Numbered from the stretch's first letter, positions 4,401 to 41,685 are shown. The stretch is 64,000 nt of DNA from IMGVR_UViG_3300027782_000025:186001-250000; one strand, 5' to 3'. Translations and numbers: made by a program. The notes: generated from the letters alone by a model not told the origin.

Positions 4401-7400
4401 TAACGGTCAAATGGGTAAATTAATATTTTCTCCAAATGGGCTATTTGTCTATACTGCGACCTACAATACTATAATTTCTATTTATACTAGGAACGCTTCA
4501 ACAGGTGTTCTTGCCCCGCTTGGTTATGTCGTCGTAACCATACCTACATCTAACACTTTTTATATTCGTGGATTGTATATCTCGCCGGATGGCTTAAACT
4601 TATATGTTTCTCAAGATGAGACTTTTAATGCTGGCCGGCAGGTCATAGGTACTTCAATATCTAATTTTAGCATAAGCCAATCGACTGGACTGCTAACCTA
4701 TGTCGATAGAATAATAGGCAATGAAGTATTTTATAACGAAGGTATTGTTTCGCCGGACGGAAAAACCGTTTACACTTTAGGCACCAAAAATCCTTCCAAT
4801 ACCCTTGGAGCTGATGCTGTTACTATTTTTTCGAGATCTACTTCTACAGGTAGTCTTACACTCAGCGGTTCTATTGCTACAGCCGCAGTACCTACCGATA
4901 TTATAATATCTCCGGATGGTTCAAACGTCTATGTTAGCAGCGCAATTATAGTAGCTATAGGCTCCCTAGGCGCCCTTACGACATATCGTAGAAACATATC
5001 CACCGGAAGCTTGACATATTTAGGAGAAATACCTACTGGCGTCACGCCACGAGGTTTATCGATTTCGCCAGATGGTTCATATATCTATCAGGGAAATGCC
5101 TTAGATCCTTCTGTTTTTATATTTTTTAGGTGCGTCTCACTATCGCCGACACCGACTCCTACTCCGACACCCTCATATGTTACCGCTGGTCGAGCCGTAT
5201 TTGGATTTGGCGTTAGTGGCAGCCTTGCAACTTCGAGCGTTACTAATCTAGTTTCAAATACTGGTGTTGTCGCGACCGATTCTGCCGGTATTGGAACGGC
5301 CAGACATTATTTGGCTGCAGCTGGCTACGGCACAGATAAAGCTATATTTGGTTATGGGATTACATTTGGCGGCAGCATAAATACAAATTTAACGAATCTT
5401 GTTAGTAATATTGGAGTTATCGCGTCTGATACATCTGGCTTGGGAACCGCTAGAATGGGCTTAGCAGCAGCCGGCTATGGCACTGATAAAGCCATATTTG
5501 GCTATGGCTATACTACAGGTTATGTCGCTATTACTAACCTTGTTAATAACACTGGTCTCGTAGCGTCTGACACTGCCGGGGTCGGCTCGGTTAGGAATTT
5601 TTTAGCTGCTGCCGGTTATGGTGGTGATAAAGCAATTTTTGGCTTTGGGCAAAACAATACCTCAATATATTCGATGACTAACCTTGTTAGTAACACTGGA
5701 GTAGTCGCGTCAGACACAAATGGTGTTGGTAGCGGACGATCAGGCTCTTCAGCAGCCGGATATGGTAAAGATAAGGCGATTTTTGGCTTTGGTTTCTTTC
5801 AGAATGTTTATATCTCCTCGACTAATCTTATCAGTAGTATCGGTGTTGTTGCATCAGATACTTCCGGCATTGGTACCGCCAGAATGCTTAATGCAGCTGC
5901 CGGATATGGTGGTGATAAAGCGATTTTTGGATATGGAAGAACTAGTTCTACTGCAGCAGTAAGCATAACGAATCTTGTTAGTAGCACCGGCGTTGTCGCC
6001 ACTGATACAACTGGCATCGGCACTGAAAGATACGGGCTTGCCGCTGCTAGTGTTGGTGGTAATTCGTTGACACCTACACCTACACCTACACCAACACCAA
6101 CACCAACACCAACACCAACACCAACACCAATCAATCCATGCATAGTAACGAACTGGTCCGCTGTGCCGACGAAAGTCACGGGCGGCAGCTCTTACTATAT
6201 AACTTACGGTCAAGGTCGTTTCATAAATCTAATCACCACCGAATCAATTGAGATAGCAGATGGTGGAACTGTTTCTGTCCCCAGCTACTTGCAGACATCA
6301 ATCGATGGTACTAATTGGACAGATACTAAATTACCAAAAAATTATGTTTTTAATGGCTTTAATGCTTATCCTTACTTTTATTCTAAAATAGCAGTTAGCG
6401 ACAAAAGAATAATCTTTTGGGCAAACAATGATGTTTATACTCCTAACTACGATATTATTTATACAGATGATTTTGGCAGCACGTTTAATTCATATAAATT
6501 CGACGGAAAATATGGTTTCGAGTTTCCTCTGAGTATAGCTTACGGAAACAATAAATTCCTTCTAGTAACACAAGACATATACACCGCGATTGGAAGGAGT
6601 GTTAACTTTTATTTTTCTGATGATGGCTTAACTTTTGGCTCTGCCACTTATAGATTTTCTTTGCCCGGCCCTGATTGGAATGTAACGTTTACTAACGGCT
6701 TATTTTTTACATTTCCAGCAGGAACTATGACCGGCAGCCAAGTTTCGACAAAGGGGTATATGTCCGATGGCGGTCCCAATGCTTTTATCCCTTTTGATTT
6801 ACCTGTCGGAGCAGGCAATATTCGTAATCTAGTTTATGGTGCCGGAAGATATGTCTTGACTTCTGAAAAAGGCGTCTACTCTAGCCAAGGACCAAATCTT
6901 GGTCCTTGGGTTAAAGCTACATTGCCAACTACTATTACAACTGGTTATAGCGATAGCGCTTTCATTACTTTTGGATCTGGTACTTTCGTAATTATGCCTT
7001 TTAGAAAAAGCGTTCCTGATACACTTCAATATGCGCTTACTTCTCAAGATGGTATTAATTGGATCGTTACCGGTAGTCTTTTTACGTATCCTACTTCTCC
7101 TAACGCTCAACCAAGGGCCAACAATATAGCGTTTGGTTATACCTCACAAGATAAATCATCTTCTAAATTCATTATTAGTGCTATAACGACTACTCAAGGC
7201 ACGCTCGGCGCGCCATTAAATTATGGTAATGTTCTTGTCGCTCAATGTGTTACTACTCCAACACCTACACCAACTCCGACTGCTACGGCTTGTTCCTTTT
7301 TAACTTGGCCGCCATTTTTTGCTAATAGTAGTGCTGCTATGACTATTACTAGTATAAATACTGGTGCGGTTATGCAAGCTACCTTAGGAAATACTATAGT

Positions 7401-10400
7401 TGTAAAAGGTAATTTAAGTTATACACCACCACAAAACGACTACAGGGAATTTTACCAATACACTAGTAGTAGTGGCGCAATTATAATTGCTTCTCCATTT
7501 TCTGCCGGAGATAAAGTATTAATTAACGAAAATTCTGCATCACAAGGTACTAATGGTTACTATTTTATCTCTAAGATTATTAACGGTATCCACACGATCG
7601 TTTGTTCTCTTACACCAACACCTACTCCAACACCGACTCCGACACCAACTCCGACCACAGTTACTACTGCTTCAAACATTTGCGGATATCTCTGGGAAAG
7701 ATCAGATATCCCATCTGACAGGATAATTGTCGATGCTGCGACCTTCGGCCTTAATTATTACGCCATCACACACAATGATATCCTTGGTAATAGTTTACCA
7801 CTAGATGTAGGTTATAAGAGTAATTCCGGAAAGACATGGACTACGTTTACATTACCCTCGTTGTCAACAGGATACTGGAATAAGATAGCTTTTTTAGCTG
7901 GCGCAAGTACACCAGTGTTTGTGATCTACAGCACACCAGGCGTCGTCCGGCTATCGACCGACGATGGTAAAACTTGGGCCAAACCGTTTGACGCGGCTCA
8001 GGTAGGTATTGATCTGATTATCGTTTCTATTAGTTATAATACTTCTGCCAGCGTGCTAGTTGCTATTCATTCAGACGGCAAAGTGTATAAACATGGGATT
8101 CACTCTACAGATCCAACCCTGCTCACATTTACACTAATAAATCTACCTACGATCCCGAATAATGTCTGGCTAACAGTTAGTTTTAGTGATAAATTTTATC
8201 TGATTGGCAAGAACGCAGACGGCTCTTCATATGATACTTATTTAACATCAATAGATGGTGTTACTTGGGTCGTAGAGAAATTCCCACGTTCTGATAAATG
8301 GACAGGCATTGAGGGTCATAGCAATACGATTGTCGCTATTACGCTGGCCAATGGCGCGGCGGTTAAGACTGGTACACCATCGGCATGGCAGAATATTGTT
8401 TTACCAAATAATGTTTCTTCCTTTAGCTTTATTAGAAGTTCATCAACCGCCTCGTCTTTTTATCTTGGCGCTGCGTTTCTAGCAGCGGTAAAAGTCCCGA
8501 GTGGTGTAAACAATTCTGATATAGCCCATTCTACAGATGGTATAAATTGGTCGACCTCGACATTAACTTTTAATACTGCAGCCCCAGGCCTTAGCTTTAT
8601 AAATTTCTTTAAAGAAAACAACACCTTTTTAGTTATTTATAACGGCGGCGCCGATGGCGCTAAGGCTGCCGTATCATACTGTAACGAAATATCTTGTTTA
8701 ACATCTTGGACAGCGAGCAGAGCGCCAGACTTTACCAGCCCGCTTGGCGGTTTGCCGAATTACTCCGACTTGCTCTTTACATATGGTTCTAATTTTATGT
8801 TGCTTAATGCAACCACTTCTGACCTTAAGATATCTGATGATGGTATAACTTGGGCGTCTTTTAATGTCTATGGTGCTTCGACACCTGGGACCTCAGTTTG
8901 GAAAGATATTGCTGTTGGCCCGAATACGACATACTTGATACTTTCAGAGGAAAAAACAGTCGCTAAGTCTGTAGATGGTGGAAGAATTTGGCAAATATAC
9001 TCGACTTTACCGACACTCCCTAGTTCAGCAAGCAAAAACTGGCTTCAAGCATGCTACGGCGCTGGAAAATATGTGGCGTTAAGTTATTCTAACATAGGTG
9101 CATATTCTGTCGACAATGGTGCAACTTGGTCACAGATGACGTTGCCTGTATTCGCTGCATGGTCTGAATTGATTTACGCTAATGGCCAATTTGTGGCTAT
9201 AGCATCAAAAGAATTATCTAGTGGTGCTTTGGTAAATGCTGGATACGCGATGGTCTCTACTGATGGTATTAACTGGAGCATATTTAATCTGCCAGTTAAG
9301 ACAGATCCTTGGGTGGATATTGTTTATGGAAGCGATGTCTTTGTGGCTATACCTAGCGCACTAGATGCGAACTACGTCGCGGTTTCTTCTGATGCCAAAA
9401 AATGGACAAAGATATCGCTTCCAACACCAAGAATAACGCCATCCGTAAAATGGGTGCGGATATCATATGGGGCTGGCATCTTTCTTTTAACTTCTTCAGA
9501 TACTATACAGGCAGTATCTGCTGATGGGTTTAGCTGGTTTATTCGCAGTGCTGGTACTCTGTCCCCAATTAGTGATGCCATCGTAGCCTTTGGTAATAAT
9601 CGTTTTGTGGCGTTTTCATCGATACCTGAACGTGGTAATCCTGCTAACATTGCTATATCAATTTGCGATGCTACACCGCCCCCTTTCAGTAACCCTGACA
9701 TTAGCTGTTTTAAACAATGGCCAAGCAATGCTACTTCCGGCGATGCCTCTTATGTCAATACAGTGGTAACTGGCATGACATCTGGCGCAACGCAAATTAA
9801 TACGATTGTTAGCGAGCCATGCGTTTTAGGATTATATTTCCTTGATCCTAATAAAACCCAACAAAAACCCGTTTGGTATTATGGTCGATTTGCCTTTTTT
9901 AATAATGGAAGTATAACAGGTGTTAGCTCTAAATTTACGACTGCTAATACCCTTGGCAATCAGATGACATATGTTTATATAGATGAATCGACTTTCTTGT
10001 TTCGCACTGGTCTGCCTGATCCTAAACTAAATGATTATTTTAATAACGAAGACTTAACCGTTTACAATTTTAATGGTACTAATTCTATTTACCCAGGTGC
10101 TAAAATCGGCATCTCGGATGGGACATATAAGTATGTTGGATTAAGAGACTTAGGCGGCTTTACCTATTATGAAGCGACCTGTAAACCAAAGAATGTAATT
10201 GTCTATACTGTTTACTTAACTTATAAACATTCATTCTATGGTGGCCTATCCAATGGCCGTAACTTTATATTAAATGAAACTGTTAATATTGTAGGTGGTG
10301 TATCGAATTCCGCTGATTATGTAGTAACAGCCATAACACCTAGAAAAGGCTCGCCTGTCAATCCGCTCTGGGAAGGTGTAGAAGTGACTCTGGCGTGTCC

Positions 10401-24144: not shown

Positions 24145-25657
24145 TTTTTCGATAAAAAAACAGGTAAATGATTCTAAGCTGATTACTCAAAAACCGAAAG
24201 TTCCAGAGTTAATTATTAAGGCACCTGTTCATATCATACCTGTCATTGCGCCGATCAAAATCGAAGCCAAGCCCACAATATTGAATGAAAAAACCATTCA
24301 AAAACCGATTCCTATTGTGCCCATCGATAAACCAGCCGAAAAGCCGGAAAAAACAAAGCACTTGCTATCAGGCGACATAATCCCCGATGAAAAATATGCC
24401 GAATATCATAAAAACATTTATGACAAGAAATATTATGAAGCAGTTAAGACAAAAGATGACTTAGTGTTAGGCACATTTGAGACCCCTCCTAAGATCAAAT
24501 CTTTAACTAAAGATGGTGTAGTATATAGAATGGGCGATTTAATTTCTCTCGAAAGGAAACCTATCATGCCGCATCTTGGCCTTGACATTGGCACTAAAAC
24601 GATCGTAGCTTCATTTAAGAACAAGAACGGTGATATAAATTATATATCTGAAATTAATGGGTTTTGGCCTTTCGAAAGAGCCACAGCATTTATTGAAAAC
24701 ATGCTTAAAGATCCAACTAAAGTTAGATCCGACGGCACCAGTAGGCCAGCACATTATTTTAAGCATGAAGAATCAAATCAACTAATCGTGCTTGGACGAG
24801 ATGCTGAAGAATTAGCCTATTCAAAGAATGATACGATGAAAAGACCAATGGCTGAAGGCGGAATTACACCAGATGAAATGTCTATGACGGTGCTGAGCAG
24901 CATCATCCATGGGATCTTAGAGACCGCAGAACGCGATGTTGGTAAGTTTGATAATAATTTGACATTGTGTTATTGCACGACAGCACCGGCTTTAAATAAA
25001 ACAAATAATATTGAATATCACGAAAGAGTTATCGATATCATCCTTAAGAGTTATAACTCACAGAGTGCTATAAAACTTCAAAAGATAAAAGAAAGTCATG
25101 CGATAGTTCTAAACCAAAGCCCAGACGGCTCTGGGATCGGCATCAGCTGGGGAGCAGGCACGGTAACGGTGACATATGTTAAGTATGGCTTAGAAGTTTA
25201 TAGTTTCTGCTGGGTTGGCGCTGGTGACTGGATAGACGAGAATGTAGCGATTAGACATGGCTATGATGCACATGCTATGAAAAGCATGAAAAAGAACAGT
25301 AAGGAAACTCCAACCACAGTATCAAAAGTCAAAATGGACATAGATCTTACCCCCGGCATACAGTATGCCGACAGGCTTCAGTTAGATATATCGCTGCACT
25401 ATGACGTGCTTATTAATCAAGTAGTGTCAGGTATCGTGGCCGGTTTTAAGGAAAATGAGGCGCAGGCAAGAATCGAAAATGGCATTAATGTTTATATGGC
25501 TGGCGGCACTAGCAGTCCGAAGGGCTTTGCTGAGCGTGTGGCTTTAATATTCAATAATAATGAATTACCTTTTGTTTTAAATAAAGTATCTGTGGCAGAA
25601 AAGCCACTATTTACCGTTGCGGCAGGGTGCTTGACAGCAGCAGAGATGTTCGAATAA
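24107..25657 (+). CDS. Actin-fold ATPase (MreB/MamK/ParM-like) with Lys/Pro-rich N-terminal extension
   Basis: Phosphate-1 LGLDIGTKTI, connect-1 ESHAIV, phosphate-2 GIGISWGAGTVTV, adenosine VYMAGGTS, connect-2 VAAGCL. Alternative start at ATG 24134. Confidence 0.75.
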   Translation: MVLEIKQIKMIHDFSIKKQVNDSKLITQKPKVPELIIKAPVHIIPVIAPIKIEAKPTILNEKTIQKPIPIVPIDKPAEKPEKTKHLLSGDIIPDEKYAEYHKNIYDKKYYEAVKTKDDLVLGTFETPPKIKSLTKDGVVYRMGDLISLERKPIMPHLGLDIGTKTIVASFKNKNGDINYISEINGFWPFERATAFIENMLKDPTKVRSDGTSRPAHYFKHEESNQLIVLGRDAEELAYSKNDTMKRPMAEGGITPDEMSMTVLSSIIHGILETAERDVGKFDNNLTLCYCTTAPALNKTNNIEYHERVIDIILKSYNSQSAIKLQKIKESHAIVLNQSPDGSGIGISWGAGTVTVTYVKYGLEVYSFCWVGAGDWIDENVAIRHGYDAHAMKSMKKNSKETPTTVSKVKMDIDLTPGIQYADRLQLDISLHYDVLINQVVSGIVAGFKENEAQARIENGINVYMAGGTSSPKGFAERVALIFNNNELPFVLNKVSVAEKPLFTVAAGCLTAAEMFE

Positions 25658-26337
25658 TGAATATAATTCATGTCGATGGTAGTTTGGTAGCTATTTTAAT
25701 AAAAGAAACTATATATATCATCGACATGGATAATTTTACGGTCCATGACCAGATTGGTGCACGGCTAGCTATCCAAAACATTGATGACTGGTTATTTAAA
25801 AACACCTTATGGGCTCATGGCATTTTTAATTTAAAGCTTTTTGTTAATTTCTTCTTACAAGGACGTGAATCTATAGTAATTAAAGACTTAGGCGTTTTAC
25901 TGTCAGAATTTATCGCTCACCTTTTTAAAAATGATCAGATCGGCCAATTGTTGAAAATGTATGATGTTGAATTACTAAATTTAGAAACAATTGACAGAGT
26001 AGTCTTACCTAATCTTAGAGATAATTTTGAAGCACACCGTCTAAAAAATGGTGAATTAGGTCTCGAATTGTTCCTTAGAAGACTAAGAGACCGAATCGCT
26101 ATATTAAATCCAAACGAAACCAGAGTCATTGATAGCTTTCTAAGTAGGTTAAAAGAGCAGCATGTCGATATAAAGATGGCTATACCCGATGGCCTTTTAG
26201 AACTAGCGAATAATTTTTTATGCACGCAAGATGTTTATACTTCTAACATAAGATACCCCAATATCATCGAATCTTTTGAGAAAATTAAAGCTCCAAAAGG
26301 TAAGAGAAATGGATTAGAAACCGTATTATCTTCATAG
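25627..26337 (+). CDS. Hypothetical protein
   Basis: 236-aa ORF (ATG at 25657 likely) filling the gap before dnaE-N. Confidence 0.6.
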   Translation: MLDSSRDVRIMNIIHVDGSLVAILIKETIYIIDMDNFTVHDQIGARLAIQNIDDWLFKNTLWAHGIFNLKLFVNFFLQGRESIVIKDLGVLLSEFIAHLFKNDQIGQLLKMYDVELLNLETIDRVVLPNLRDNFEAHRLKNGELGLELFLRRLRDRIAILNPNETRVIDSFLSRLKEQHVDIKMAIPDGLLELANNFLCTQDVYTSNIRYPNIIESFEKIKAPKGKRNGLETVLSS

Positions 26338-26350
26338 TATAGGAGATAAT

Positions 26351-27751
26351 ATGGAATATCAAGGTTCATCAGATTTTGTTCATCTTCACTCTCACACACT
26401 TTATAGCATGCTTGATGGTGTGGCCTCTCCGGCCCAATATGCCGAAGCTTGTTATAAAAGGAAGTACCAAGCGATGGCTATCACCGAACACGGCCATATG
26501 GCCAGTGTTCCTGAAGCTTACGCTGCTTTTAAACAATATGGTATCAAATACATCCCTGGGTGCGAAATATACTATAATGATTTTGAACTAAAAAGGCAAG
26601 AGCTTTTGGCAAGCGGAATAAATGTCAGATCGCTAGAATGGAGAAAAGAGAATCCAGAGCTAGCAGGAAGAATTATCAGAAATAGACATCTCACAGTAAT
26701 TTGCAAAAACAAGACCGGATTTGAAAATCTCTTAAAGTTAACAACTCAAGCATATGAGACAGGCCTGTTCGGCGTATCTATTAAACAGTATAATCGCATA
26801 TGGTTTGAAAAGTTATGTGAATATCGCGAAGGACTTATTATATTATCAGGATGTCTAAATGGACCTATAAGTCATGAATTGCGTACTAAATCGATAGTAA
26901 ATAAAGCAGGCGATGTCATCAGAGAAATAAGCCGAAAAGAAAGGCTTGAAAACGCTATCGCCAATATAAAAAAATTTAAAGAAGCGTTTGGAGAAGACTA
27001 CTACATAGAACTACAGATGCCTGGTGTTGAAGGCGACATGTTTGTGTTTCAGACATCTATTATGCTGGCAGACCATTTCAAGATTAAGACCGTGCTGGCT
27101 AATGATTCTCATTACATGGAAAGAAAAGATTTTCAAATCCAAAAGATCATGATGGCGATAGCTCAAGACGTAACTGTTGACTCTCCTGATTTATTTCATA
27201 CAAACAGCGACGAGCAATACTTCAAACAGCGTAGTGAATTATGGAGTAGATATAATGAGACTGAATATTCCAAAGGGTATACGGCTAGAGAATTCGAACT
27301 AATGTGTGATCATACTTTAGAAATAGCCGACAAATGCGAAAATATCGAATTTGATACGGATCCAAAAATACCGACCATCGTAGACGCTGATAATGAATTA
27401 CGGCGCTTGGTCGCATCAAAGCTTATATCGTTAGGACTTCATAAAAATGAACAAAAACACTTGATCGATGGTAGAGAAGTTACCTATCTAGACCAAGCTA
27501 AAATCGAATTAAATCGTTTTATAGAAAAAGGTTTCGCCAGCTATTTTCTCATTACTAAGAATATTATAGAGTACGGTAAAGAACAAGGTTGGCCGTTCAC
27601 TGCTAGAGGTAGCGCTGGAGGCTCCTTAATTTGCTACTTATTAAATATTACATCAGTCGACCCTCTTTCGTGGGGTCTTTCTTTTGATAGATTTCTTGCA
27701 CCGAGCCGCGGTGGCTATATGCTTAATGTCAAGATGACTAAAGGAGATTAG
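26351..27751 (+). CDS. dnaE: DNA polymerase III alpha, N-terminal half (PHP domain + thumb/RGS segment)
   Basis: FVHLHSHTLYSMLDG, ITEHG, PGCE, ANDSHY, RGSAGGSLICYLLNITSVDPL, FDRFLAPSR. Stops just before the catalytic PDIDID. AGGAG RBS upstream. Confidence 0.9.
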   Translation: MEYQGSSDFVHLHSHTLYSMLDGVASPAQYAEACYKRKYQAMAITEHGHMASVPEAYAAFKQYGIKYIPGCEIYYNDFELKRQELLASGINVRSLEWRKENPELAGRIIRNRHLTVICKNKTGFENLLKLTTQAYETGLFGVSIKQYNRIWFEKLCEYREGLIILSGCLNGPISHELRTKSIVNKAGDVIREISRKERLENAIANIKKFKEAFGEDYYIELQMPGVEGDMFVFQTSIMLADHFKIKTVLANDSHYMERKDFQIQKIMMAIAQDVTVDSPDLFHTNSDEQYFKQRSELWSRYNETEYSKGYTAREFELMCDHTLEIADKCENIEFDTDPKIPTIVDADNELRRLVASKLISLGLHKNEQKHLIDGREVTYLDQAKIELNRFIEKGFASYFLITKNIIEYGKEQGWPFTARGSAGGSLICYLLNITSVDPLSWGLSFDRFLAPSRGGYMLNVKMTKGD

Positions 27752-27752
27752 C

Positions 27753-28184
27753 TTGCAGAAGTATTTATTACACGCTTTGAACACACATTTAAAAGTCATG
27801 CAAAAGCCTACTGAAACATTATGTGTATTCTCGCTTAAATTCATCGATGTTCTTATAGATGACGATAAAGTCAGAGCTGAGAAAGAATCACTAGATTTGT
27901 TAATAAATATTCAAAATAATATAATTTCTAGCATTGTCGAAACTATTGACCGCCTAGAGAAAGAAGCTACCGATTCTACTAAAGTACTGGGATCGGCGAT
28001 GCTTAATACAAGAAAATCTATTTATTCTCATACAATAAATTTAAAATTAGTAGATGTAAGTAATCTAGAAGATAGATATAACAAAGCTATAGTTGAAATC
28101 GCTAAAGCGATGAGGTTATTTAATCTTTGTGGTCTTTCTGAAGCAATTAAAATAAATGATGTAAATGGGAACCAGATATGTTAG
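27753..28184 (+). CDS. Hypothetical protein (between the dnaE halves)
   Basis: 143-aa helical ORF, tightly packed; start codon uncertain. Confidence 0.5.
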   Translation: MQKYLLHALNTHLKVMQKPTETLCVFSLKFIDVLIDDDKVRAEKESLDLLINIQNNIISSIVETIDRLEKEATDSTKVLGSAMLNTRKSIYSHTINLKLVDVSNLEDRYNKAIVEIAKAMRLFNLCGLSEAIKINDVNGNQIC

Positions 28185-28624
28185 AGATGCAAATAAATAG
28201 ATTAGATAATTCCAAGATTAATTCTAAAATCGTCGTTACTTTAATAAAAAATAATGGCAAAAAAATGAAGACCCAACGGCGTGATATCGCTTTTAAATTG
28301 AAAATGACTGATGATACCATATATAAGTATCAAGCTATCCTAGTTGGTCTATCTGCGATAAAAGATGTTAATCAATCGATAAGAATCAGCATGTTGGGGT
28401 TTGAATCGAATGATTTATATGGTACATCAAACGATAAACAGCTATATTTCGACGAATTAAAAAGACGTATTATCAAAATATGCCAACGTCATAATAATGT
28501 ATTTTTTGATGCTAATATGATAGCTTTAGATAATGATTATGTCAATATAATTAAAAAGTATTTAGTATCACAATCAGAGTACCATGATACCGGTACAGTC
28601 TTAATCGATAAATCTAAGGTTTAA
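28178..28624 (+). CDS. Hypothetical protein (between the dnaE halves)
   Basis: 148-aa ORF overlapping the previous stop codon. Confidence 0.55.
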   Translation: MLEMQINRLDNSKINSKIVVTLIKNNGKKMKTQRRDIAFKLKMTDDTIYKYQAILVGLSAIKDVNQSIRISMLGFESNDLYGTSNDKQLYFDELKRRIIKICQRHNNVFFDANMIALDNDYVNIIKKYLVSQSEYHDTGTVLIDKSKV

Positions 28625-28686
28625 TACTATGGCTGTTTGGCACAACACAAGCTTAGATCTTTTTATGTATATTGAGATATAAAATT

Positions 28687-29031
28687 ATGGATCATAAAGG
28701 TGAATATGATAAATATGCTTTCATTATAATGGAAGCGCAAACCGATAATATTGTCAACATAGTACGATTAAAGTCGAACGAAGAAAGACTGAAAACCATT
28801 AAAAGCATACGTTCTAAAGGGCAATATTTATTTTACGCTATGACGCACCAAGACGAAAAAACCAAGAGGGTCACTATAAAAAGGCCCTTTGTCGTCGATT
28901 TTGATTCAGTTCCTTCAGCTGAGGAATCAAAATGTATTGAAAATGATATAAAGAAGCTTAGCTGCAAAAAATGTGGCAAAAGTTTTACTTCTACTTCTGG
29001 GCTAACGAACCATCTAAATGCAAAACATTAA
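28687..29031 (+). CDS. Protein with C-terminal classical C2H2 zinc finger
   Basis: CKKCGKSFTSTSGLTNHLNAKH matches C-x2-C-x3-F-x5-L-x2-H-x4-H; overlaps the dnaE-C start. Confidence 0.7.
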   Translation: MDHKGEYDKYAFIIMEAQTDNIVNIVRLKSNEERLKTIKSIRSKGQYLFYAMTHQDEKTKRVTIKRPFVVDFDSVPSAEESKCIENDIKKLSCKKCGKSFTSTSGLTNHLNAKH

Positions 29032-31741
29032 ATCTTGGGAAGAAATTGTCGAAAAGGCTGGAGAGTTGGTTACCGATAAACCGAAGATTTATAAAGACAG
29101 ACTAAAATTCGAAATATATGAAATCGAAAAGCAAGGGGCAGAACGCTACTGGTTAGAATTAGTGACTGATGGAACGACTTTCGATGCAAACCCGAATCGT
29201 CTATTACTACCATACCTTTTAAATCTAGTTTCTGTCGACCCAATCTCCACAGACCATAGCGGCATCATGACAAGCATATCTGCCAATGATGTTTTAAAAT
29301 ACAAAGACCATAACAATGGTAAAATGCCAACAGGAATCTACAGAGATTCTGACATGCCGGACATCGATATAGATTGCTTGCCTGGGGCCAGAGATCATTT
29401 AAAAGAATACGTAATTTCTAAATATGGCCAGAATTCAGAAGATAGTTATGGATCTGTATGTAGCGTTGGCACATGGCAAACTTATAAATTCAAATCTGCA
29501 ATAATCGATGTCTCTGTGGCTCTTGGAATAATGTCTAGATTTGATGCCGAAAGAACGACCACACAATTACCAGAGCACGCAGATGATTTGCCGGAAAATG
29601 GTATATCAGTCTGCAGAGGTAAATATTTAAAGGAAGGTGTCGAGATAGAATGTGGCACTATTCACGGTGATGCTACTTGCCCATCTTGTAAGCAATCCAT
29701 CACGGATGCTCCGACTATTGGTCAGCTTATTGAAGAACTACCAGTTCTCAAAGAATTCGCGATAAAAAACCCTGAGATCATAGCATCAGCGATCAAACTA
29801 GTAGGCAGAATTAGAAACATGGGCATGCACGCCGGTGCTTTACTAATAACAGACAGAGCGTTGTTTGGCAATATACCTATGGCCAAGAGCAGTAATAAGG
29901 GCTATTGGGTAAGCATGTGGACAGAAGGTAGAAGCACCCAGCTCTCAAAATTTGGGTATGTGAAATGGGACTGGCTTGGTCTTAAAACCTTAGAATATAT
30001 ATTTAGGTGTTGCGAGATGGTTAAACTTAACCGCGACATCAATTTTGGCGAAAATTTGTCTGGCTGGGAAGACATCGATCCTAAGCAACGTAAAGCCGGC
30101 TTTTTTATCGATGCTTCTGGTGTTAAACACATTATCAGCCTCGACGACGAAGGGGCTCTAAAGCTAGCAAATAAGCAGAAATGCGATGGTATTTTTCAGT
30201 TCGACACTGAATTAGCCATGTCTTTGCTGGCTCATGGCGTTAGGAATTTCGAAGACTTAATGTTAATCAATGCGATGGGCCACCCAGGGCCAATTGCCGC
30301 TCTACCAGAGACAATGGCAAATCGTGACGATCCCACGATGGCATGGAAAAAACGCATGCATCCAGAAGTCTATAATATTCTTAAAGAAACTTATGGACAA
30401 CTGGTTTATCAAGAGCAATTAACGCAGCTTTGGCAGAGATTAGCTGGATTTACTGCGCCTGAAGCTCAAGAAACGAGGAAGGCCGTTGCTAAGAAATGGA
30501 CACACAAATTAAGAAGCGTAGAACAGAAATGGGTCGCTGGTGCTTCTAAAACCATCGGCGAAGACGAAGCTCGCACTATTTGGTCCAAAATGGTATCATT
30601 CGGTCGTTATGCATTTAATAAATCACATTCTGTAGCTTATTGTTTGGTAACCCTACGATGCTTGTTCCTAAAAGCGCATTTTGCGCCTGAGTTTTGGGCA
30701 TCTGTCATGAATGATTGCCATCCAGATAAGCTGGTACGTTATATGGGTGTTGCAAGATCAGAAGAATGGAAACCGACAGCAATCACTAAACTCGGTTCGA
30801 GCAGATCAGATGATCCATTGCGCTTTGAAGCTATCGACATTAACAATTTATCATTAAAGTTTATAGTAAAAGATAACACGATATTTGTTGGTGTCAGTAG
30901 CATAAAAGGCTTTGGCGAAAAAATAGCTGAGTGCTTAATCACTGCACACAAATATATAAACATGGATGATTTTATTTTAAAGACCGGGATAAAATCTAAA
31001 ACAGTGTTAGAACGGTTAATTAAACTTGGGGCCTTTAGAAATCTTGAAAGACACAATAATAGCAAGGCTTTGTGGGTTTATTATCAAACGAAGTATGGCA
31101 ATGGGCCAGATGCAAAAGAGACTAAAAGCTTCATCTCCAACCTCATTATTTCTAAACAAGGATGGAATGATGGCTCTATTGCGGCTGAGAGGGAAAGACT
31201 CGCCAGTGAATACAGATTGATCTATCCAAAGAAAAAAGTTATACCTAAAAAATTACTTAATTGGAACCCTGAACCGATCATCGATTTTGATGCCGTTCTT
31301 GGCGCTATCGGAGATGATTTTAGTTTTGAAGAAAGACTACAATTTCAGAACGATTACTTAGGATATTACATCGACTCGCCTCTAGGATTATTTAGTTGCA
31401 GGGGTGATCTAACGATTGCTGCAGCAAAGACAAATGCTAAGTCCGGCCAAGACATCATAGCTATCGAAGGAATAATTGTAAATATAGAATATGCTACATC
31501 AAAGAATAATAAACCGTACGCTAAAATATCGACATCAGATGGTATGTTAAAAACCAGTATTATGGTGTGGTCCAAAGAATTGTCGGGGTTAGATAAAACC
31601 AAATTGATGATTGGCGCCGGAATTAGAGTGATCGTGGATTATGATGGCGAGCGAAATAGTTTTTCATTACGACGCAATACTTCGATAAACATACTGAAGA
31701 GAAAGCCAACTAATGCAACTGCCGACGAAAGACGGGATTAA
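29018..31741 (+). CDS. dnaE: DNA polymerase III alpha, C-terminal half (palm/fingers/HhH/OB)
   Basis: MPDIDIDC, GMHAGALLI, VKWDWLGLKTL, DGIFQF, LVYQEQL, YAFNKSHS, IKGFGEK, and a C-terminal OB fold. Confidence 0.9.
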   Translation: MQNIKSWEEIVEKAGELVTDKPKIYKDRLKFEIYEIEKQGAERYWLELVTDGTTFDANPNRLLLPYLLNLVSVDPISTDHSGIMTSISANDVLKYKDHNNGKMPTGIYRDSDMPDIDIDCLPGARDHLKEYVISKYGQNSEDSYGSVCSVGTWQTYKFKSAIIDVSVALGIMSRFDAERTTTQLPEHADDLPENGISVCRGKYLKEGVEIECGTIHGDATCPSCKQSITDAPTIGQLIEELPVLKEFAIKNPEIIASAIKLVGRIRNMGMHAGALLITDRALFGNIPMAKSSNKGYWVSMWTEGRSTQLSKFGYVKWDWLGLKTLEYIFRCCEMVKLNRDINFGENLSGWEDIDPKQRKAGFFIDASGVKHIISLDDEGALKLANKQKCDGIFQFDTELAMSLLAHGVRNFEDLMLINAMGHPGPIAALPETMANRDDPTMAWKKRMHPEVYNILKETYGQLVYQEQLTQLWQRLAGFTAPEAQETRKAVAKKWTHKLRSVEQKWVAGASKTIGEDEARTIWSKMVSFGRYAFNKSHSVAYCLVTLRCLFLKAHFAPEFWASVMNDCHPDKLVRYMGVARSEEWKPTAITKLGSSRSDDPLRFEAIDINNLSLKFIVKDNTIFVGVSSIKGFGEKIAECLITAHKYINMDDFILKTGIKSKTVLERLIKLGAFRNLERHNNSKALWVYYQTKYGNGPDAKETKSFISNLIISKQGWNDGSIAAERERLASEYRLIYPKKKVIPKKLLNWNPEPIIDFDAVLGAIGDDFSFEERLQFQNDYLGYYIDSPLGLFSCRGDLTIAAAKTNAKSGQDIIAIEGIIVNIEYATSKNNKPYAKISTSDGMLKTSIMVWSKELSGLDKTKLMIGAGIRVIVDYDGERNSFSLRRNTSINILKRKPTNATADERRD

Positions 31742-32255
31742 ATGCGACGGCTGCGGGCTTCAGTTTCATGAAGATTTTACTTATTATTCGATAGATTTTA
31801 GAAGCGCTAAATCAAAATTTGGGCAACACTTATCATTGAGAGATCTAGACTCAGCACCAATGGTCGACACTTTTGATTATTGCAGTATGTGTTATGAGAA
31901 ACTCCAAGACAAGATAGTAGAAATAAACCAAAAAACATCTCAGAAAACTGGCTCAAGATATTGTGATCTTTCTGGACAAGATCTGATGCAGTTAAAAACA
32001 TATTACTATGCTACCATAACTGGAGCTACAGTCAAACAAACAGGTGTACCATTTACTTGTGAACAGTGCGGCCTTCAAGCGCACACCCCGACAACAGTAT
32101 GTAAGTGCGGGTCGGTTAAATATGTTAGGAAAGCCGACGTACATACTGATAAAAAATTAATAGAAATCTTCATAACACCAGATATATTTAATAGCTTTGC
32201 CGTTAGAAGAGAAAAGCATAAACAAGAAGGAAGTAATTGGAATGTTACCAGCTAA
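31713..32255 (+). CDS. Multi-CxxC zinc-binding hypothetical protein
   Basis: CDGC, CSMC, CDLSG, CEQC and CKCG motifs. Confidence 0.6.
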   Translation: MQLPTKDGIKCDGCGLQFHEDFTYYSIDFRSAKSKFGQHLSLRDLDSAPMVDTFDYCSMCYEKLQDKIVEINQKTSQKTGSRYCDLSGQDLMQLKTYYYATITGATVKQTGVPFTCEQCGLQAHTPTTVCKCGSVKYVRKADVHTDKKLIEIFITPDIFNSFAVRREKHKQEGSNWNVTS

Positions 32256-32757
32256 CCCATATGATTTGCATGAAATACTCTTAAATAACGTCTTAATGCA
32301 TGCGAGACCGATAGAGTGGAATTCTCACATGGTCGATCAGCATACTAACAAGAGTGCGCTTGGCGATCAAGTAAGAGCCACAAAGGCCGTCCTTACATGT
32401 CCTGATTGTGCATCTTTAGTCGAAATATTGGATATGTATGATCTTAATGGTTATTATTATTGCGAATGTTTTAAAGGTTATAAAAAGACTAGAGATCAGC
32501 TGCAGACAGACGAAATAAATTATGAAGACCCATTTCAGAATCCATTTTCAGAAGATCTGAATCTAGAATCCTTTCTATACCCACAGATAGCTAGTACACC
32601 GGTGAAAACTGGAACCATTAAAGCTGATAAAAAAGTAAAGCCCAAAAAATTATGTAAGGTAGATATCAAAGCTAAGAATAATGATGTCATCGCTAATGAA
32701 GATAACATCATGAAATTGGCGAGTGAACCATTCAATGACGAAGATCTATTAGAATAA
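32197..32757 (+). CDS. Hypothetical zinc-ribbon protein
   Basis: CPDC and CEC motifs; acidic C-terminus; start codon uncertain. Confidence 0.5.
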   Translation: MPLEEKSINKKEVIGMLPANPYDLHEILLNNVLMHARPIEWNSHMVDQHTNKSALGDQVRATKAVLTCPDCASLVEILDMYDLNGYYYCECFKGYKKTRDQLQTDEINYEDPFQNPFSEDLNLESFLYPQIASTPVKTGTIKADKKVKPKKLCKVDIKAKNNDVIANEDNIMKLASEPFNDEDLLE

Positions 32758-36359: not shown

Positions 36360-36701
36360 TTGTCATATATTGGTATTTATCTGATGGAAAACGAAGAAAG
36401 AATTAGCAGATTCGATCAGGTTACTATTAATACTACCCGTAGAGTAAGTTATCTATCTGCACCTGAGGGTCAACAGCTTAATCCGAATGGTATGTGGATG
36501 GTAGCTGCAGCTATAGGAAATGAATTATTATTAACTAAAGAATCAATAGTAATACGGATACCTGCGGCAGATGTTAAGAAAGTATTAGATTATCATAGGA
36601 CATTTACAAACATCTTAGACTCTTTAGGAAAGTTTAACAATTATGAAAGCAGAAAAGAAAGACCCACCGAAGACCCTCCAAGACCTGATGAAGAGGATTG
36701 A
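36360..36701 (+). CDS. Hypothetical protein
   Basis: ORF overlapping the recA start (ATG at 36384 possible). Confidence 0.5.
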   Translation: MSYIGIYLMENEERISRFDQVTINTTRRVSYLSAPEGQQLNPNGMWMVAAAIGNELLLTKESIVIRIPAADVKKVLDYHRTFTNILDSLGKFNNYESRKERPTEDPPRPDEED

Positions 36702-37755
36702 TAAGGACTTCGGCCCAGGGACAATCATGCGTGGCAGAAGCAGCATAGTTAATGTTAGCATAGTCCCGACTGGAATCCCCTCTATCGACAAGGCATTAGG
36801 AGCTGGTGGTGTGCCTATCGGCCGTACTTTGGAAATATTCGGGCCAGAAAGTAGCGGAAAGACAACTACATGCCTACACATCGCCTCTGCATTCCAGAAG
36901 CATTATTTCAAGGGTAAGGAACGTGATGGTGTTGTAGCATATATCGATGCTGAACATGCCCTAGATATAGAATGGGCGAGAAGATTAGGAGTCAATACGG
37001 AAACACTTTGTATTTCTCAACCAGATAGTGGTGAAGATGCGTTTCGACTTATAGAAGTGTTGGTAGAGTCTGGCCAAGTTGATCTAGTCGTGGTTGATTC
37101 CGTGGCTGCACTTATACCTAAGGCTATATTAGAAGAGGATATCGGTAAAGCCACCATGGGTGCTCTAGCCCAACTCATGTCTAAAGCATTAAGCAAATTA
37201 AAGGGCAAATGCAATAATAGCGGCACCACTTTAGTATTCGTTAATCAGCTTAGAGAGAAGGTCGGTATGGTTTTTGGAAACCCAGAAGTGACACCTGGCG
37301 GCCGTGCACTTAAATATTATGCTTCGGTGAGAGCAGAAATCAAACGCAGCACCGCTATAAAATCTTCTGATGACACTGTTATCGGACATCACACTACTAT
37401 GAAAATAGTTAAAAACAAAGTCGCAGCTCCTTTTAGAGTCGCTGAGTTCGACATATTCTATGGCACAAAATCATACCCGATTGCAGGTATTGATGCAGTT
37501 TCGTCCCTTTTAGATGTCGGCCTTGATGTCGGCGTTATATCTAAGAGCGGATCATTCTTTAATTATGATGGTAAAAGTTTGGGCAATGGTGCTCAAAACG
37601 CTTCTAAAGCCTTAAGGAATGATGACGTTCTGTTTAAAAAGATAAAAGATGAAATATACTTAAAGGCCTTCGGCCCTGATTTCGGCCAAGTAAAGGTCGA
37701 TGATGATTTAGAAGACAAATACCTTGATGATGAGGAAGACCCAAATGGCAAATAG
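36643..37755 (+). CDS. recA: Recombinase RecA
   Basis: IFGPESSGKTT Walker A, YIDAEHALD, SQPDSGE, VVVDSVAAL, FVNQLREK, TPGGRALKYYAS, KNKVAAPF. Confidence 0.97.
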   Translation: MKAEKKDPPKTLQDLMKRIDKDFGPGTIMRGRSSIVNVSIVPTGIPSIDKALGAGGVPIGRTLEIFGPESSGKTTTCLHIASAFQKHYFKGKERDGVVAYIDAEHALDIEWARRLGVNTETLCISQPDSGEDAFRLIEVLVESGQVDLVVVDSVAALIPKAILEEDIGKATMGALAQLMSKALSKLKGKCNNSGTTLVFVNQLREKVGMVFGNPEVTPGGRALKYYASVRAEIKRSTAIKSSDDTVIGHHTTMKIVKNKVAAPFRVAEFDIFYGTKSYPIAGIDAVSSLLDVGLDVGVISKSGSFFNYDGKSLGNGAQNASKALRNDDVLFKKIKDEIYLKAFGPDFGQVKVDDDLEDKYLDDEEDPNGK

Positions 37756-38080: not shown

Positions 38081-39421
38081 ATGACACAAATCGTTTCTTA
38101 TGATGCTGGCAACATAAATGATAATGAAGATGAAAAACCATTTGGAAAATACCAAGAAGAAGCGATAATTTCATTAGCTCTTGATCACCCAGAATTCTTC
38201 TCCAACGTCGGAAGATACCTTAAGCCAGACATGTTTGGTCGAACCGAATGCAAGTATGTTATGGCTGTTCTTCTTAATTATTACGAAAAATTTAACATTA
38301 TCCCCACTAGGCCACTGCTTAGAGATATAGTCGAAAAACAATTAACGTCTGATCAGCCTTTTGAGATAGTGTTCAAATTACTTGATAGGAAATCAGACCC
38401 CAGAGAAGTTCCGATCATCAAAGACACTTTAATGAAGTGGGCCAAAAATCGAGCATATGGTTTAATTTATAGCGAAGAAGCTATACAAGCTTATGAATCA
38501 GGTCGTTTTGAAGAATTAGAGAAAATAGTCTCAGAGGCAAATAAGGTAACAGACATAGGTGAAGGTGGCTTTTGGCTGCTAGAACAGTTTGAAAAATTAT
38601 TCCAATCAGACGCCATAGATCATAGAACTACGGGATTTCCGAGACTTGATCGAATCCTTAATAATGGCGGACCATCACCAAAAGAAGTGTTATGTTGGTT
38701 AGCGCCGACAAACACCGGTAAATCGATATTGTTGGTTAATAATGCGATTTCATCTCTTAAAGGCGCTAATAATGATGGGACAAATGGTCAGGACGTACTC
38801 CTTGTTACCTTTGAGCTAGACACTATTAAAACCGCTCTAAGATGCCTTTCGGCTACGACAGGTATACCTCAAGATCAAGTAGCTAATAATCAAGATTACA
38901 TTAGAAGAGTCATTAACACTATCAAAGACACCTATAATAAAAAGCTATTAATATATGAATTTCCCCCTGACGAATGTAGCGTGGATCATATATATGCTTT
39001 AATAGATAATCTTAAACGAAAAGAAGGATGGCGACCAGACGTTGTTGTGGTTGATTATCTTGATTTAATGGTCAGTCGTAATGCAGCATATAACAAGGAT
39101 GATTATACCAGACAGAAGCATATCGCTACTGAGCTACGTGGTTTAGCTAAAAACGAAAACGTATTAGTCTTTACTGCTACCCAAACCAATCGTAGCGGTG
39201 GGGAAGGGTCGGAACCAATCGATCTATCAAAAACCGCCGAAAGCTATGGTAAGCAATTTGCACTTGACTATGTAATTAGTTTAAACCAATCTATCGAGGA
39301 TAAGTTGGAAAAACCGCCTAGGATTAGGTTTTATGTCGCTAAAAATAGAAATGGTCCTAAAAATGAATTAATCACCTGTGAGATTAATTATGACACTATG
39401 GTAGTTAAGGAGATGGCCTGA
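38081..39421 (+). CDS. dnaB: Replicative DNA helicase, DnaB/T4 gp41 family
   Basis: LAPTNTGKS Walker A, VTFEL, VVVDYLDLM Walker B, TATQTNR, KNRNG. Confidence 0.9.
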   Translation: MTQIVSYDAGNINDNEDEKPFGKYQEEAIISLALDHPEFFSNVGRYLKPDMFGRTECKYVMAVLLNYYEKFNIIPTRPLLRDIVEKQLTSDQPFEIVFKLLDRKSDPREVPIIKDTLMKWAKNRAYGLIYSEEAIQAYESGRFEELEKIVSEANKVTDIGEGGFWLLEQFEKLFQSDAIDHRTTGFPRLDRILNNGGPSPKEVLCWLAPTNTGKSILLVNNAISSLKGANNDGTNGQDVLLVTFELDTIKTALRCLSATTGIPQDQVANNQDYIRRVINTIKDTYNKKLLIYEFPPDECSVDHIYALIDNLKRKEGWRPDVVVVDYLDLMVSRNAAYNKDDYTRQKHIATELRGLAKNENVLVFTATQTNRSGGEGSEPIDLSKTAESYGKQFALDYVISLNQSIEDKLEKPPRIRFYVAKNRNGPKNELITCEINYDTMVVKEMA

Positions 39422-39630
39422 TGAAGATGCGCATCATAATTGATGTCAATGTTTCGAAAACATTGGCGCAAACGATGGAAAGGAATGGCTTTAATGTTAT
39501 TCCAGAGGGAACTGGGTTAGGGATAAGAATTCCAAATAGTCCTGCGATCACCAAGAGCAAAAGCAAAATAACGTTTACAGAGATTTTTACAGAGATTACA
39601 GATGAACCAAGTACAAAGGAGATAAGATGA
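39421..39630 (+). CDS. Hypothetical protein
   Basis: 69-aa ORF coupled to both neighbours; ends in an AGGAG RBS for groES. Confidence 0.55.
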   Translation: MKMRIIIDVNVSKTLAQTMERNGFNVIPEGTGLGIRIPNSPAITKSKSKITFTEIFTEITDEPSTKEIR

Positions 39631-40064
39631 TACCGAAGACTGCTAAGCTAATAAAAGAAGAAACCGCATCAAACACCAAGGCCAACGTCGATGAGCCTAA
39701 AGTATGCTCAAAAGCCAAGAAATGCTGCGATAGCGAGCCAGAAAATTACCAAGAAATAGAAATACGTGAAATCAAATGCCTTAATGATTTCGTTGCTATA
39801 TTGAGATTCGAAGAAGAATCGGTAATCGAAATACCCGATCATCAACGTCTTAAAAATGAAGGTATGGTTATTGGCGTTGGGCCTGGTGTCCCTCCAACTA
39901 TAAATGCACAAGTTATAATAGGCGATGTTGTAGCTTTTATGCCGCGTAATATAATCACCGAGATTAAAGGTACAAAATACCCCTACGAAGGCAAGACTAT
40001 TACCATCGTTTCAGAACGCAATATTATTATGACATTAGATCCAATCATCCACAGGTTCGTATAA
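39627..40064 (+). CDS. groES: Co-chaperonin GroES (Cpn10)
   Basis: IKCLNDFVAI...EGMVIGVGPG...IGDVVAF...Y.G....IVSERNII pattern, with an N-terminal extension. Confidence 0.75.
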   Translation: MIPKTAKLIKEETASNTKANVDEPKVCSKAKKCCDSEPENYQEIEIREIKCLNDFVAILRFEEESVIEIPDHQRLKNEGMVIGVGPGVPPTINAQVIIGDVVAFMPRNIITEIKGTKYPYEGKTITIVSERNIIMTLDPIIHRFV

Positions 40065-40485: not shown

Positions 40486-41685
40486 ATGAAGCCAATTCTA
40501 TTCGCTATCAAAAGAGGAAGACAAGTCGCATATCCAGCCATCATAGGTATTAAACGCGACCAAAAGATTTACAAGCAAATCCTTTTTGATAATAGCAACG
40601 CAAAATCTATAAGCGATATAAGGATTGACCAGTCCAAGATAAAAGCATTATTCGACCATGCGGTTAGCACCAGATGCGCGATAGTCACCAACGATCGCGC
40701 ATCACTGATCGCCGCTATGGGTTATAACAATAGAGCTATCGCCGACAACATCTTCGATCATAACGAAATAATTCATGAAACAAGTGCCCTCGATGAATTT
40801 TTAGCATCAACAGATGCTTCCGTTCAAGAACCATATAAAAAGCTATTGTTTGACGCTGGGTGCGTTTATGATAAACTCTCTGACTTGCCAATTTATGTAA
40901 ATTACACTCCTCTTAAGTCATCTTGGTCACATGACACATTTACTGGCAGGAGCAAGTGCACAGGTTTTAATATTCAAGGCTATAACATGCCTGATTTTAT
41001 CACAAGGGACGGGATCTTCGAAGATAAAGTATTACTGCATTTCGACTGGATCTGCGCTGATCTAAGAATAGCATCAGTTGTATCAGGAGATGATGAATTA
41101 GAATCAGCTTTTAGGCATGGTGATCCATACGAGTATCTTTTTGATCGCGCAGGGGACATGTTTACTGATCGCAAGGATAGCAAAATAGCTCTACTTAAGG
41201 CAATAAATTCTCTGAATTTTGATAGTAGCATATTTGATATATGCTATGGAGATCTTAGAACTTGGCTTATAGAGTGCGCCCATAAGCTTACTGAGAGTGA
41301 ACCCTTGGAGACATTGCTGGGCCGTAAATTTATTATCCCAAAGGAAAAGACCATATTATCAGGTATTAATGGTGTTCTGCAAGGATCTATAGCCCATGCT
41401 ATGCAGAACACCATTACGAAAGTTAATGCTTTATTTCCAAGACATATTATATGTGACATCCATGATTCTCTAGTAATGTCTTGTGAAAACGACCGAAGTA
41501 GCATACAATATATGATAAATAGTGTAAAATCGATAATGTCGAAACCGCTTGAAGGGCTGATAGATAGGGATATATATTTTCCGTTAAGATACGGCATTGG
41601 CAAGAAATGGCGAGAATATAAATATAGTAATATACAGAGGGAACATGAACAACAAGAAACTGCAGAAGATACGTCAGAGGGCTAA
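40486..41685 (+). CDS. Minimal family-A DNA polymerase-like protein
   Basis: TGRS, motif A FDWICADLRIA, ETLLGR, NGVLQGSIAH, motif C DIHDSLV, GIGKKW. Motif B is degenerate and no exonuclease domain is evident. Confidence 0.7.
   Translation: MKPILFAIKRGRQVAYPAIIGIKRDQKIYKQILFDNSNAKSISDIRIDQSKIKALFDHAVSTRCAIVTNDRASLIAAMGYNNRAIADNIFDHNEIIHETSALDEFLASTDASVQEPYKKLLFDAGCVYDKLSDLPIYVNYTPLKSSWSHDTFTGRSKCTGFNIQGYNMPDFITRDGIFEDKVLLHFDWICADLRIASVVSGDDELESAFRHGDPYEYLFDRAGDMFTDRKDSKIALLKAINSLNFDSSIFDICYGDLRTWLIECAHKLTESEPLETLLGRKFIIPKEKTILSGINGVLQGSIAHAMQNTITKVNALFPRHIICDIHDSLVMSCENDRSSIQYMINSVKSIMSKPLEGLIDRDIYFPLRYGIGKKWREYKYSNIQREHEQQETAEDTSEG

Follow-up and report, generated by a model that had tools for sequence, protein, structure and literature searches.

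A putative two-subunit family-C DNA polymerase of uncultured jumbo phages, split at the palm active site with a duplication at the junction

The replicases of bacteria are family-C polymerases, whose catalytic subunit is regarded as a single chain, and to our knowledge the only well-known natural split of such an enzyme is one repaired by inteins. How, then, could a family-C polymerase work when its gene is divided within the active site and no means of rejoining the products is detected? This question is raised by a dnaE locus in IMGVR_UViG_3300027782_000025:186001-250000, a stretch of 64,000 nucleotides that is called the window here and represents bases 186001-250000 of a 274,625-bp IMG/VR virus record, from a jumbo phage genome estimated to be ~70% complete. 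The stretch occurs in sequencing runs from freshwater and lake metagenomes. Two genes on the plus strand encode the polymerase, as judged from open reading frames (ORFs), Pfam and PDB matches, alignments and relatives: dnaE-N (26351..27751), for an N-terminal subunit of 466 aa with the PHP domain and the first palm segment, and dnaE-C (29018..31741), for a C-terminal subunit of 907 aa with a head, the catalytic palm, thumb, fingers, HhH and OB fold. Sequence comparison and structure modeling make it probable that the two products form an obligate heterodimer, a two-subunit family-C polymerase with a composite active site.

The place of the cut was read from profiles, motifs and structures. The dnaE-N product, or N-half, ends with FDRFLAPSR followed by GGYMLNVKMTKGD and a stop codon at 27749-27751, this tail (27710..27751) lying just past the point where an intact DnaE enters PDxDxD; then come 1266 nt with three ORFs, and dnaE-C starts at 29018. 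Positions 14-98 of the Pfam DNA_pol3_alpha profile match residues 370-453 of the N-half, and the profile picks up again at position 99 on residue 111 of the dnaE-C product, or C-half, to run to position 260, which is an exact 98|99 cut; the phrog_405 profile is severed at 439|440. The N-half is alignable to residues 7-417 of Mycobacterium tuberculosis DnaE1, including the PHP motifs, and the alignment of the C-half with the alpha subunits of Thermus and E. coli starts at the catalytic strand. In structure comparison, Pol III alpha chains match the C-half model at Z 19-23, with D115 and D117 equivalent to E. coli D401 and D403 and model residue 118 opposite E. coli 404. Based on the profile breakpoint and the motif positions, the cut therefore falls between the RGSAGGS loop, the G-S motif of the Pol-beta-like palm (N-half residues 419-425, 27605..27625), and the MPDIDID catalytic strand (C-half residues 113-119, 29354..29374). 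A first-pass annotation of the locus had described, with correct coordinates, an intein-free split just before PDxDxD, and this was borne out by the Pfam cut and by the lack of any Pfam intein or Hint domain.

All marks of a DnaE-type family-C enzyme are present, spread over two chains. The N-half holds the PHP domain (26381..27016; PF02811, E 7e-36, residues 11-222) and, as found by Pfam and hhalign, a first copy of the palm N-terminal segment in which the RGS loop is kept (residues ~346-453, 27386..27709). In the C-half, the KWDWLGL motif (29963..29983) contains the third catalytic Asp, D318, and was aligned with the Taq K-x-D-F-L-G-L motif. Downstream of the palm, Pfam finds DNA_pol3_finger (PF17657) and HHH_6 (PF14579), so that fingers (residues 357-511), HhH (604-680) and a C-terminal OB fold (~796-897; OB-fold matches at Z 10-11.6) occupy 30086..31708. 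Typically the Pol III alpha catalytic subunit is a single polypeptide, a pattern from which dnaE-N/dnaE-C and the corresponding genes of relatives depart.

The same arrangement might arise from a misassembled contig, or from the continuing decay of a polymerase gene that an insertion had disrupted. The source of the window is a metagenome assembly, and G+C falls to 0.30 in 28001-29000, which could suggest foreign DNA. However, contigs from an independent sample (X4) span both the dnaE-N stop with the start of ORF1 (27407-28293) and the ORF3/dnaE-C junction (28827-29272) with zero differences, a 2024 lake sample (X6) covers 27699-27936, and run X1, the probable source, yields a single 55-kb contig over the whole stretch. 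Decay is contradicted by the relatives. Hundreds of freshwater and marine relatives have both halves intact and every catalytic residue invariant. The C-half has >2000 relatives, the best 120 of which are 42-95% identical and ~900 aa long apart from a few longer ones, several of these carrying intein domains; a PHP domain was found in 0/120 of these best matches, that is, no unsplit protein occurs among them. For the N-half, 606 relatives of ~470 aa and 60-84% identity were found. The order dnaE-N, 0-5 small ORFs, dnaE-C is common to 9/9 distinct loci (the window, L002 with L003, L004, L005, L006, L015, L016, L017 and L021), and a partial tenth, L019, ends at a contig edge.

Invariance extends to each functional motif. 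The nine PHP metal ligands, H13, H15, D22, H47, E72, H113, C168, D252 and H254, are unchanged in 49 relatives, as the first-pass claim of an intact PHP site in the N half implied. R419, G420, S421, A422, G424 and S425 of the RGSAGGS loop are invariant in ~50 relatives of the N-half, and D115, D117 and D119, as well as K316, W317, D318, L320, G321 and L322, are invariant in the C-half. The core of the tail, GGYMLN, is conserved among 109 relatives. Both genes are therefore under purifying selection and neither is a decaying pseudogene, which makes an assembly artefact or a gene in decay extremely improbable. The split is ancient and family-wide. A megablast search of the phage collection gave no match, and no cultured phage relative above ~32% identity was found. 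Within the thumb region of the C-half, four cysteines (C199, C212, C221 and C224; 29612..29689) invariant in 50 relatives form a probable zinc ribbon; the matched bacterial alpha sequences have no such insert.

What, then, stands at the start of dnaE-C in place of the missing palm segment? The first-pass annotation had seen in it a degenerate second copy of the segment that ends dnaE-N, devoid of RGSAGGS and leading into MPDIDID. Fold and profile comparison agree that the head, residues 1-110 (29018..29347), repeats the palm N-terminal segment, so that ~100 palm residues are encoded twice, the upstream copy with RGS and the downstream copy without it. Direct comparison is faint in the window's own clade. 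BLASTP of the N-half tail region against the head in the window aligned 7 residues only (E 0.32), Pfam searched on 35 heads gave a single weak DNA_pol3_alpha match (E 0.17), a head profile found nothing at E <= 10 among PDB sequences, and hhalign of window-clade heads against N-tails was marginal (E 0.032), with the register given in the first-pass annotation. The duplication hence rests on transitive profile evidence and on fold. Pairwise alignments of the C-half with the unsplit phage DnaEs of GBK1 and ZY21 extend in register through the head and are gapped at the RGS loop. A profile made from the head only matches residues 316-384 of the GBK1 DnaE at E 1.9e-4, the top non-self match among 810 decoy ORFs, and in the unsplit 1179-aa DnaE of megaphage LR756511 both blocks are collinear with it.

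Stronger links were obtained through a wider family. When searched against 1.84 billion proteins, the head profile matched 177 at E <= 0.001; among the 150 matches listed, all lie in the first ~135 residues of the protein and 148 in the first ~25, and only head-first C-halves, no unsplit DnaE, occur among the matches. Many of these wider-family proteins have just 12-17 residues from the head to PDIDxD. A profile built from residues 1-170 of 60 head-first proteins matches E. coli alpha 316-465 as a single HMMER domain at E 1.3e-15, with a 10-residue gap exactly at the G-R-G-S loop of alpha. By hhalign, the wider head profile matches residues 346-446 of the N-half family over 80 columns (E 4.9e-6, 86% probability), again with the first-pass register, and profile-profile comparison connects the window head family with the wider one at E 1.6e-34. 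In P0277, P0281, P0308 and about 30 proteins of ~130 aa, a beta-rich insert of ~80 residues sits between the head and PDIDxD. From their sequences, the ~130-aa head-only entries resemble copies of these genes truncated by a contig edge, rather than stand-alone heads or split-intein fragments.

Modeling gave the same assignment. The head modeled alone reached an AlphaFold2 pLDDT of 88, and its eight best Foldseek matches among 350,542 PDB chains were all C-family polymerases, at weak E-values of 0.9-4.5 and with no other fold among the eight. VIA-align placed head residues 2-79 on E. coli alpha 280-385, M. tuberculosis DnaE1 309-405 and PolC 825-914 (Z 6.0-7.2, root-mean-square deviation ~3 Å), the segment that the N-half already carries. 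The duplicated stretch thus comes to ~100 residues rather than the ~55 first proposed. In L021 the duplication was seen directly: the N-half covers DNA_pol3_alpha positions 2-100, and a single continuous match to positions 3-260 was obtained for the C-half. The L021 head alone matches Pfam at E 4.1e-5, and the L021 N-tail matches its C-head by BLASTP at E 2e-5. L021 is a distant relative (contig Ga0366829_1000347, halves at 4780-8610), and the usual C-terminus of its C-half is replaced by a weakly matching domain of uracil-DNA-glycosylase type (PF03167, E 1.9e-6). Conservation of the head, with a mean column identity of 41%, comes close to that of the whole C-half, at 46%. RGSAGGS is missing from every head inspected, a conserved S-N-P-N loop standing at the RGS position, and PDIDID is invariant in the C-half. 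The word subfunctionalised, applied to the two copies in the first-pass annotation, would follow from the motif that each has kept. A candidate correspondence between the N-half tail (GGYMLNV...) and a degenerate MPDIDID was dropped, as the residues do not correspond.

Could the halves nevertheless be joined into a single alpha chain, through a degenerate intron, trans-splicing, an unrecognised intein, read-through or frameshifting? In Alicyclobacillus phage KKP_3916 (L014, OQ846916.1), dnaE lies in at least three exons at 4468-9660, presumably spliced, and all its pieces are annotated as hypothetical proteins. The first interruption, at DNA_pol3_alpha position ~99, comprises a LAGLIDADG ORF and a group I intron at 6805-7138 (Rfam 70.6 bits), and the second an intron-like match of 41.7 bits, with the Rfam gathering score at 50, and an HNH-repeat ORF. 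The codon region immediately before the catalytic strand is therefore a homing site in that phage, at the very place of the split in the window; KKP_3916 has the group I intron and the LAGLIDADG ORF without the duplicated segment, whereas the window dnaE shows the reverse. PHROGs also holds N-half-sized families (phrog_7513 and phrog_13169), and dnaE pieces therefore occur in cultured phage genomes, some at least through introns, as in KKP_3916. Metagenomic split-intein DnaE loci are likewise known (PMC2677866), and in L021 the two genes are merely 3 nt apart.

Against any such joining, no Rfam intron was found in 25500-32500 even at a permissive E <= 1, in a search that does find the KKP_3916 introns. 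The N-half runs just 13 residues past its homology, the head is helical and not of the Hint fold, and the residues before MPDIDID read ...YRDSD, without His-Asn. Full inteins with LAGLIDADG domains were observed elsewhere in C-halves, in proteins P0075, P0083, P0113, P0116, P0262 and P0264 (for example at a YAFNK motif); inteins thus do invade the dnaE-C gene, though not at the split. In an RNA-library run (X9), contigs cover 28519-28746 in the intervening region and 29158-29362 in the head and contain no joint, at thin coverage and with DNA carry-over possible. A lone X9 contig over part of dnaE-N carries an insertion of two A's after 26967 that would put the gene out of frame; a difference between strains, an error of assembly or slippage of a polymerase may be responsible. 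A chain joined at the canonical junction would moreover lack the conserved (41% mean identity) and confidently folded head of 110 residues, and the ORFs in between encode conserved proteins. At the split, intein, detectable intron and misassembly are absent, and production of a single joined chain is accordingly very unlikely.

If the chains stay separate, do they act together? A complex of N-half 1-466 and C-half 1-530 was predicted from author-made alignments in three runs, with three controls. It scored an ipSAE of 0.85 in the three runs against 0.00 for the best control, a measure of likeness to intact alpha and not a proof of binding, since intact alpha structures are known; in the tool calibration, which holds only roughly with author-made alignments, the 0.85 mark corresponds to 58/80 solved complexes and 2/110 mismatched pairs. 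The ~300 predicted contacts include N-half residues 408-422, the RGS loop region, and 451-462 in the tail, and on the C-half residues 31-93 of the head and 106-121 of the catalytic strand, so that the RGS region and catalytic strand both lie in the predicted interface. The C-half modeled alone was confident save for the palm core strands 109-122, 149-153 and 268-320, with pLDDT below 50, which fits a palm that needs the other chain. In the 274-kb record, dnaE-N and dnaE-C are the only DNA_pol3_alpha matches, and no Pfam match to PolB, a DnaQ-type exonuclease or a beta-clamp was found, absences that are not conclusive in an incomplete record.

The two products might instead be autonomous enzymes, the N-half a PHP exonuclease or phosphoesterase and the C-half a self-sufficient polymerase whose head would stand in for the palm N-terminal segment and which would bind dNTP with no G-S loop. 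The first-pass annotation had offered a similar alternative, a PHP proofreader beside a remodelled polymerase, and the structural premise of its readings, a split free of inteins with a duplicated junction and RGS lost from one copy, is correct. In favour of two enzymes, the head folds well, is homologous to the palm N-terminal segment and has its own conserved S-N-P-N loop at the RGS position. In L021 the C-half even spans the whole Pfam domain. However, among ~50 relatives at 60-84% identity the N-half shows little or no change in RGSAGGS or in the rest of its palm segment, which a pure exonuclease would not need. Pol-beta-like nucleotidyltransferases are typified by the G-S motif, which no head inspected has. 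The lone C-half has a palm core of low predicted confidence, the predicted interface is strong where controls score zero, and dnaE-N and dnaE-C are linked in every locus examined. Separate enzymes are thus improbable and less favoured than the heterodimer, which the first-pass annotation had also put forward and which is supported by the invariance of RGSAGGS, by gene linkage and by the complex score.

Several observations weigh against the heterodimer and the duplication. Tail and head are only weakly similar when compared directly within the window's clade, by BLASTP and hhalign alike. Rigid alignment of the whole C-half model begins at residue 118, so that the head was not superposed on the palm N-terminal segment of alpha and had to be folded alone. 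The complete palm domain of the L021 C-half would allow an autonomous polymerase, and the RNA-library evidence is thin and open to DNA carry-over. The predictor may owe its high score for the complex to intact Pol III alpha structures already known to it, and the calibration is rough for the alignments used. Finally, a 399-aa family-A polymerase-like ORF is present at 40486-41685. This ORF matches the last third of the family-A profile only (PF00476 positions 248-381, E 5.6e-10), as a minimal PolA-like protein, and belongs to a replication module with RecA (36643-37755), a DnaB-like helicase (38081-39421) and a Cpn10-like ORF (39627-40064).

A model is proposed in which a DnaE-type replicative polymerase is made as two polypeptides that would assemble non-covalently into one enzyme. 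The PHP domain is the proofreader in DnaE1-type enzymes that retain all nine ligands, and the N subunit would supply this 3'-5' exonuclease together with the first palm segment, whose RGSAGGS loop holds the triphosphate of the incoming deoxynucleoside triphosphate (dNTP). The C subunit would contribute the catalytic D115, D117 and D318 along with thumb, fingers, HhH and OB fold. The Pol-beta-like active site would therefore be composite, since its G-S motif and its DxD lie on different chains. As to origin, ~100 palm codons (E. coli alpha 280-385) may have been partially duplicated in tandem, with a stop between the copies. Complementary loss could have come next, the upstream copy keeping RGS and losing everything downstream, the downstream copy losing RGS and becoming the folded helical head that now presumably packs against the N subunit. 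Partial tandem duplication, a stop and complementary loss make up the simplest account; since the L021 halves are 3 nt apart with nothing between them, a mobile insertion is not needed to explain the split. We infer the heterodimer, the shared active site, the docking role of head and tail and the evolutionary order from these combined comparisons and models.

The ORFs between the halves raise a further question, that of their part in the enzyme. The first-pass annotation called them three unrelated ORFs; there are indeed three, but two of them are not unrelated to the locus, as the ORF1 and ORF3 families recur between the halves in relatives. ORF1 (27753..28184, plus strand as for all three, 143 aa) has no Pfam, PHROG or Atlas family, and its homologues lie between the halves in L002, L004, L005, L006, L015 and L017. 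ORF2 (28178..28624, 148 aa) is confined to close relatives, being 88% identical in L004 without a significant match in more distant loci. ORF3 (28672..29031, 119 aa) ends in a C2H2 zinc finger (Pfam zf-C2H2, E 1.4e-5) and in Atlas matches zinc-finger clusters only; a gene of its family stands directly upstream of dnaE-C in L002, L004, L005, L006, L016 and L017, fused into a 327-aa protein in L016. Beyond the C2H2 finger, ORF1-3 have no Pfam or PHROG family, and no match to GIY-YIG, HNH, LAGLIDADG or other nucleases was found in them with Pfam and PHROGs. The dnaE-N stop and the ORF1 start are one base apart, ORF1 and ORF2 overlap by 7 nt, and the ORF3 stop overlaps the dnaE-C start by 14 nt; the genes, so tightly spaced or overlapping, are probably co-transcribed with coupled translation. 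Terminator-like sites between the halves are not in excess of those in shuffled sequence.

In four relatives an ORF of RNase H fold occupies the interval (L006 6956-7408, L005 6224-6730, L015 5513-5983 and L017 5076-5483), assigned by an Atlas structure match of TM 0.83 to RNase_H clusters; by eye, some of its catalytic carboxylates look replaced. ORF2 of the window, in the same position, has no significant similarity to it, and the L005 interval also holds an FkbM-type methyltransferase. The intervening ORFs may be accessory factors or long-resident passengers. It is a tentative idea, and on balance an unlikely one, that the duplicated palm segment was kept on purpose as a docking module in a genuinely multi-subunit replicase, with the ORF1, RNase H-fold and C2H2 families as accessory subunits. 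If that were true, the phage could regulate or exchange the subunit for proofreading and the dNTP loop, for example for assembly-controlled fidelity or for resistance to host factors that target alpha.

The genes flanking the pair were also found to be shared with relatives. Upstream, a 516-aa actin-fold protein at 24107-25657 matches Pfam Volactin (PF25216, E 7e-38), and relatives have a homologue of it one or two genes ahead of dnaE-N, which links an actin-like phage gene to the replicase. Downstream, a cysteine-rich ORF of 180 aa (31713-32255) overlaps the end of dnaE-C and is kept directly downstream in all close relatives, its N-terminal MQL..KDGI.CD.CG recurring in L002, L004, L005 and L006; no family match was found for it.

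How does the phage pair compare with known polymerases and known split enzymes? Bacterial DnaE-type alpha subunits, such as M. tuberculosis DnaE1 and Thermus aquaticus alpha, have the same domains in the same order, whereas the phage enzyme comes as two chains, has ~100 palm residues twice and a four-cysteine insert, and is only 20-30% identical. The cyanobacterial DnaE break lies in the fingers region, elsewhere than the PDxDxD strand, and overlapping duplication at the junction is unknown to us in split family-B polymerases. Cyanobacterial split-intein DnaE and the 'fractured' metagenomic DnaE loci are joined by protein splicing and have their breaks at other points (PMC2677866; PMC3919608 for context). 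The fractured loci also contain an ORF between the halves, but their intein halves ligate the chains, whereas the phage split has no detected intein. Split family-B polymerases, namely T4-related gp43A/B and Methanothermobacter PolB (cited in PMC2677866) and that of a chimallivirus (PMC13648687), also function as two chains without splicing, and differ in family, fold and break points.

The nearest functional analogue would be the NrdA of Aeromonas phage Aeh1, which is split by mobE; no splicing occurs, a single operon yields the halves as separate translation products that reassemble, and the new terminal tails are essential (PMC3045599). Both are cases of 'genes in pieces', with a break through the active site of an essential phage enzyme and no splicing of RNA or protein. 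Unlike in Aeh1, no homing endonuclease was recognised between the dnaE halves, and the extra N-terminal sequence is derived from the enzyme itself instead of being foreign; the dnaE split is ancient and family-wide, that of Aeh1 confined to one phage. No description of this dnaE split was found in the searchable literature, and surveys of C-family polymerases and jumbo phages (PMC3919608, PMC12926913, PMC7824862, PMC9123017) describe no such arrangement. The first-pass annotation was right in essentials and understated the extent of both the duplication and the family.

The phage pair extends 'genes in pieces' to a family-C replicase, with a junction duplicated from the enzyme itself. For annotation, 'DNA polymerase III alpha' calls of ~470 aa and ~900 aa in phage metagenomes are to be read as partners, not as fragments. 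The locus offers a clear case of gene fission by partial duplication and complementary loss, in which the overlap would have been kept as a folded domain, as well as a way to study proofreading and dNTP binding in vitro apart from catalysis. It also constitutes a natural experiment on how much of a Pol-beta-like palm must be covalently continuous. In conclusion, uncultured jumbo phages of a large group, widespread in fresh and marine waters, appear to replicate with a polymerase whose active site is distributed over two chains.

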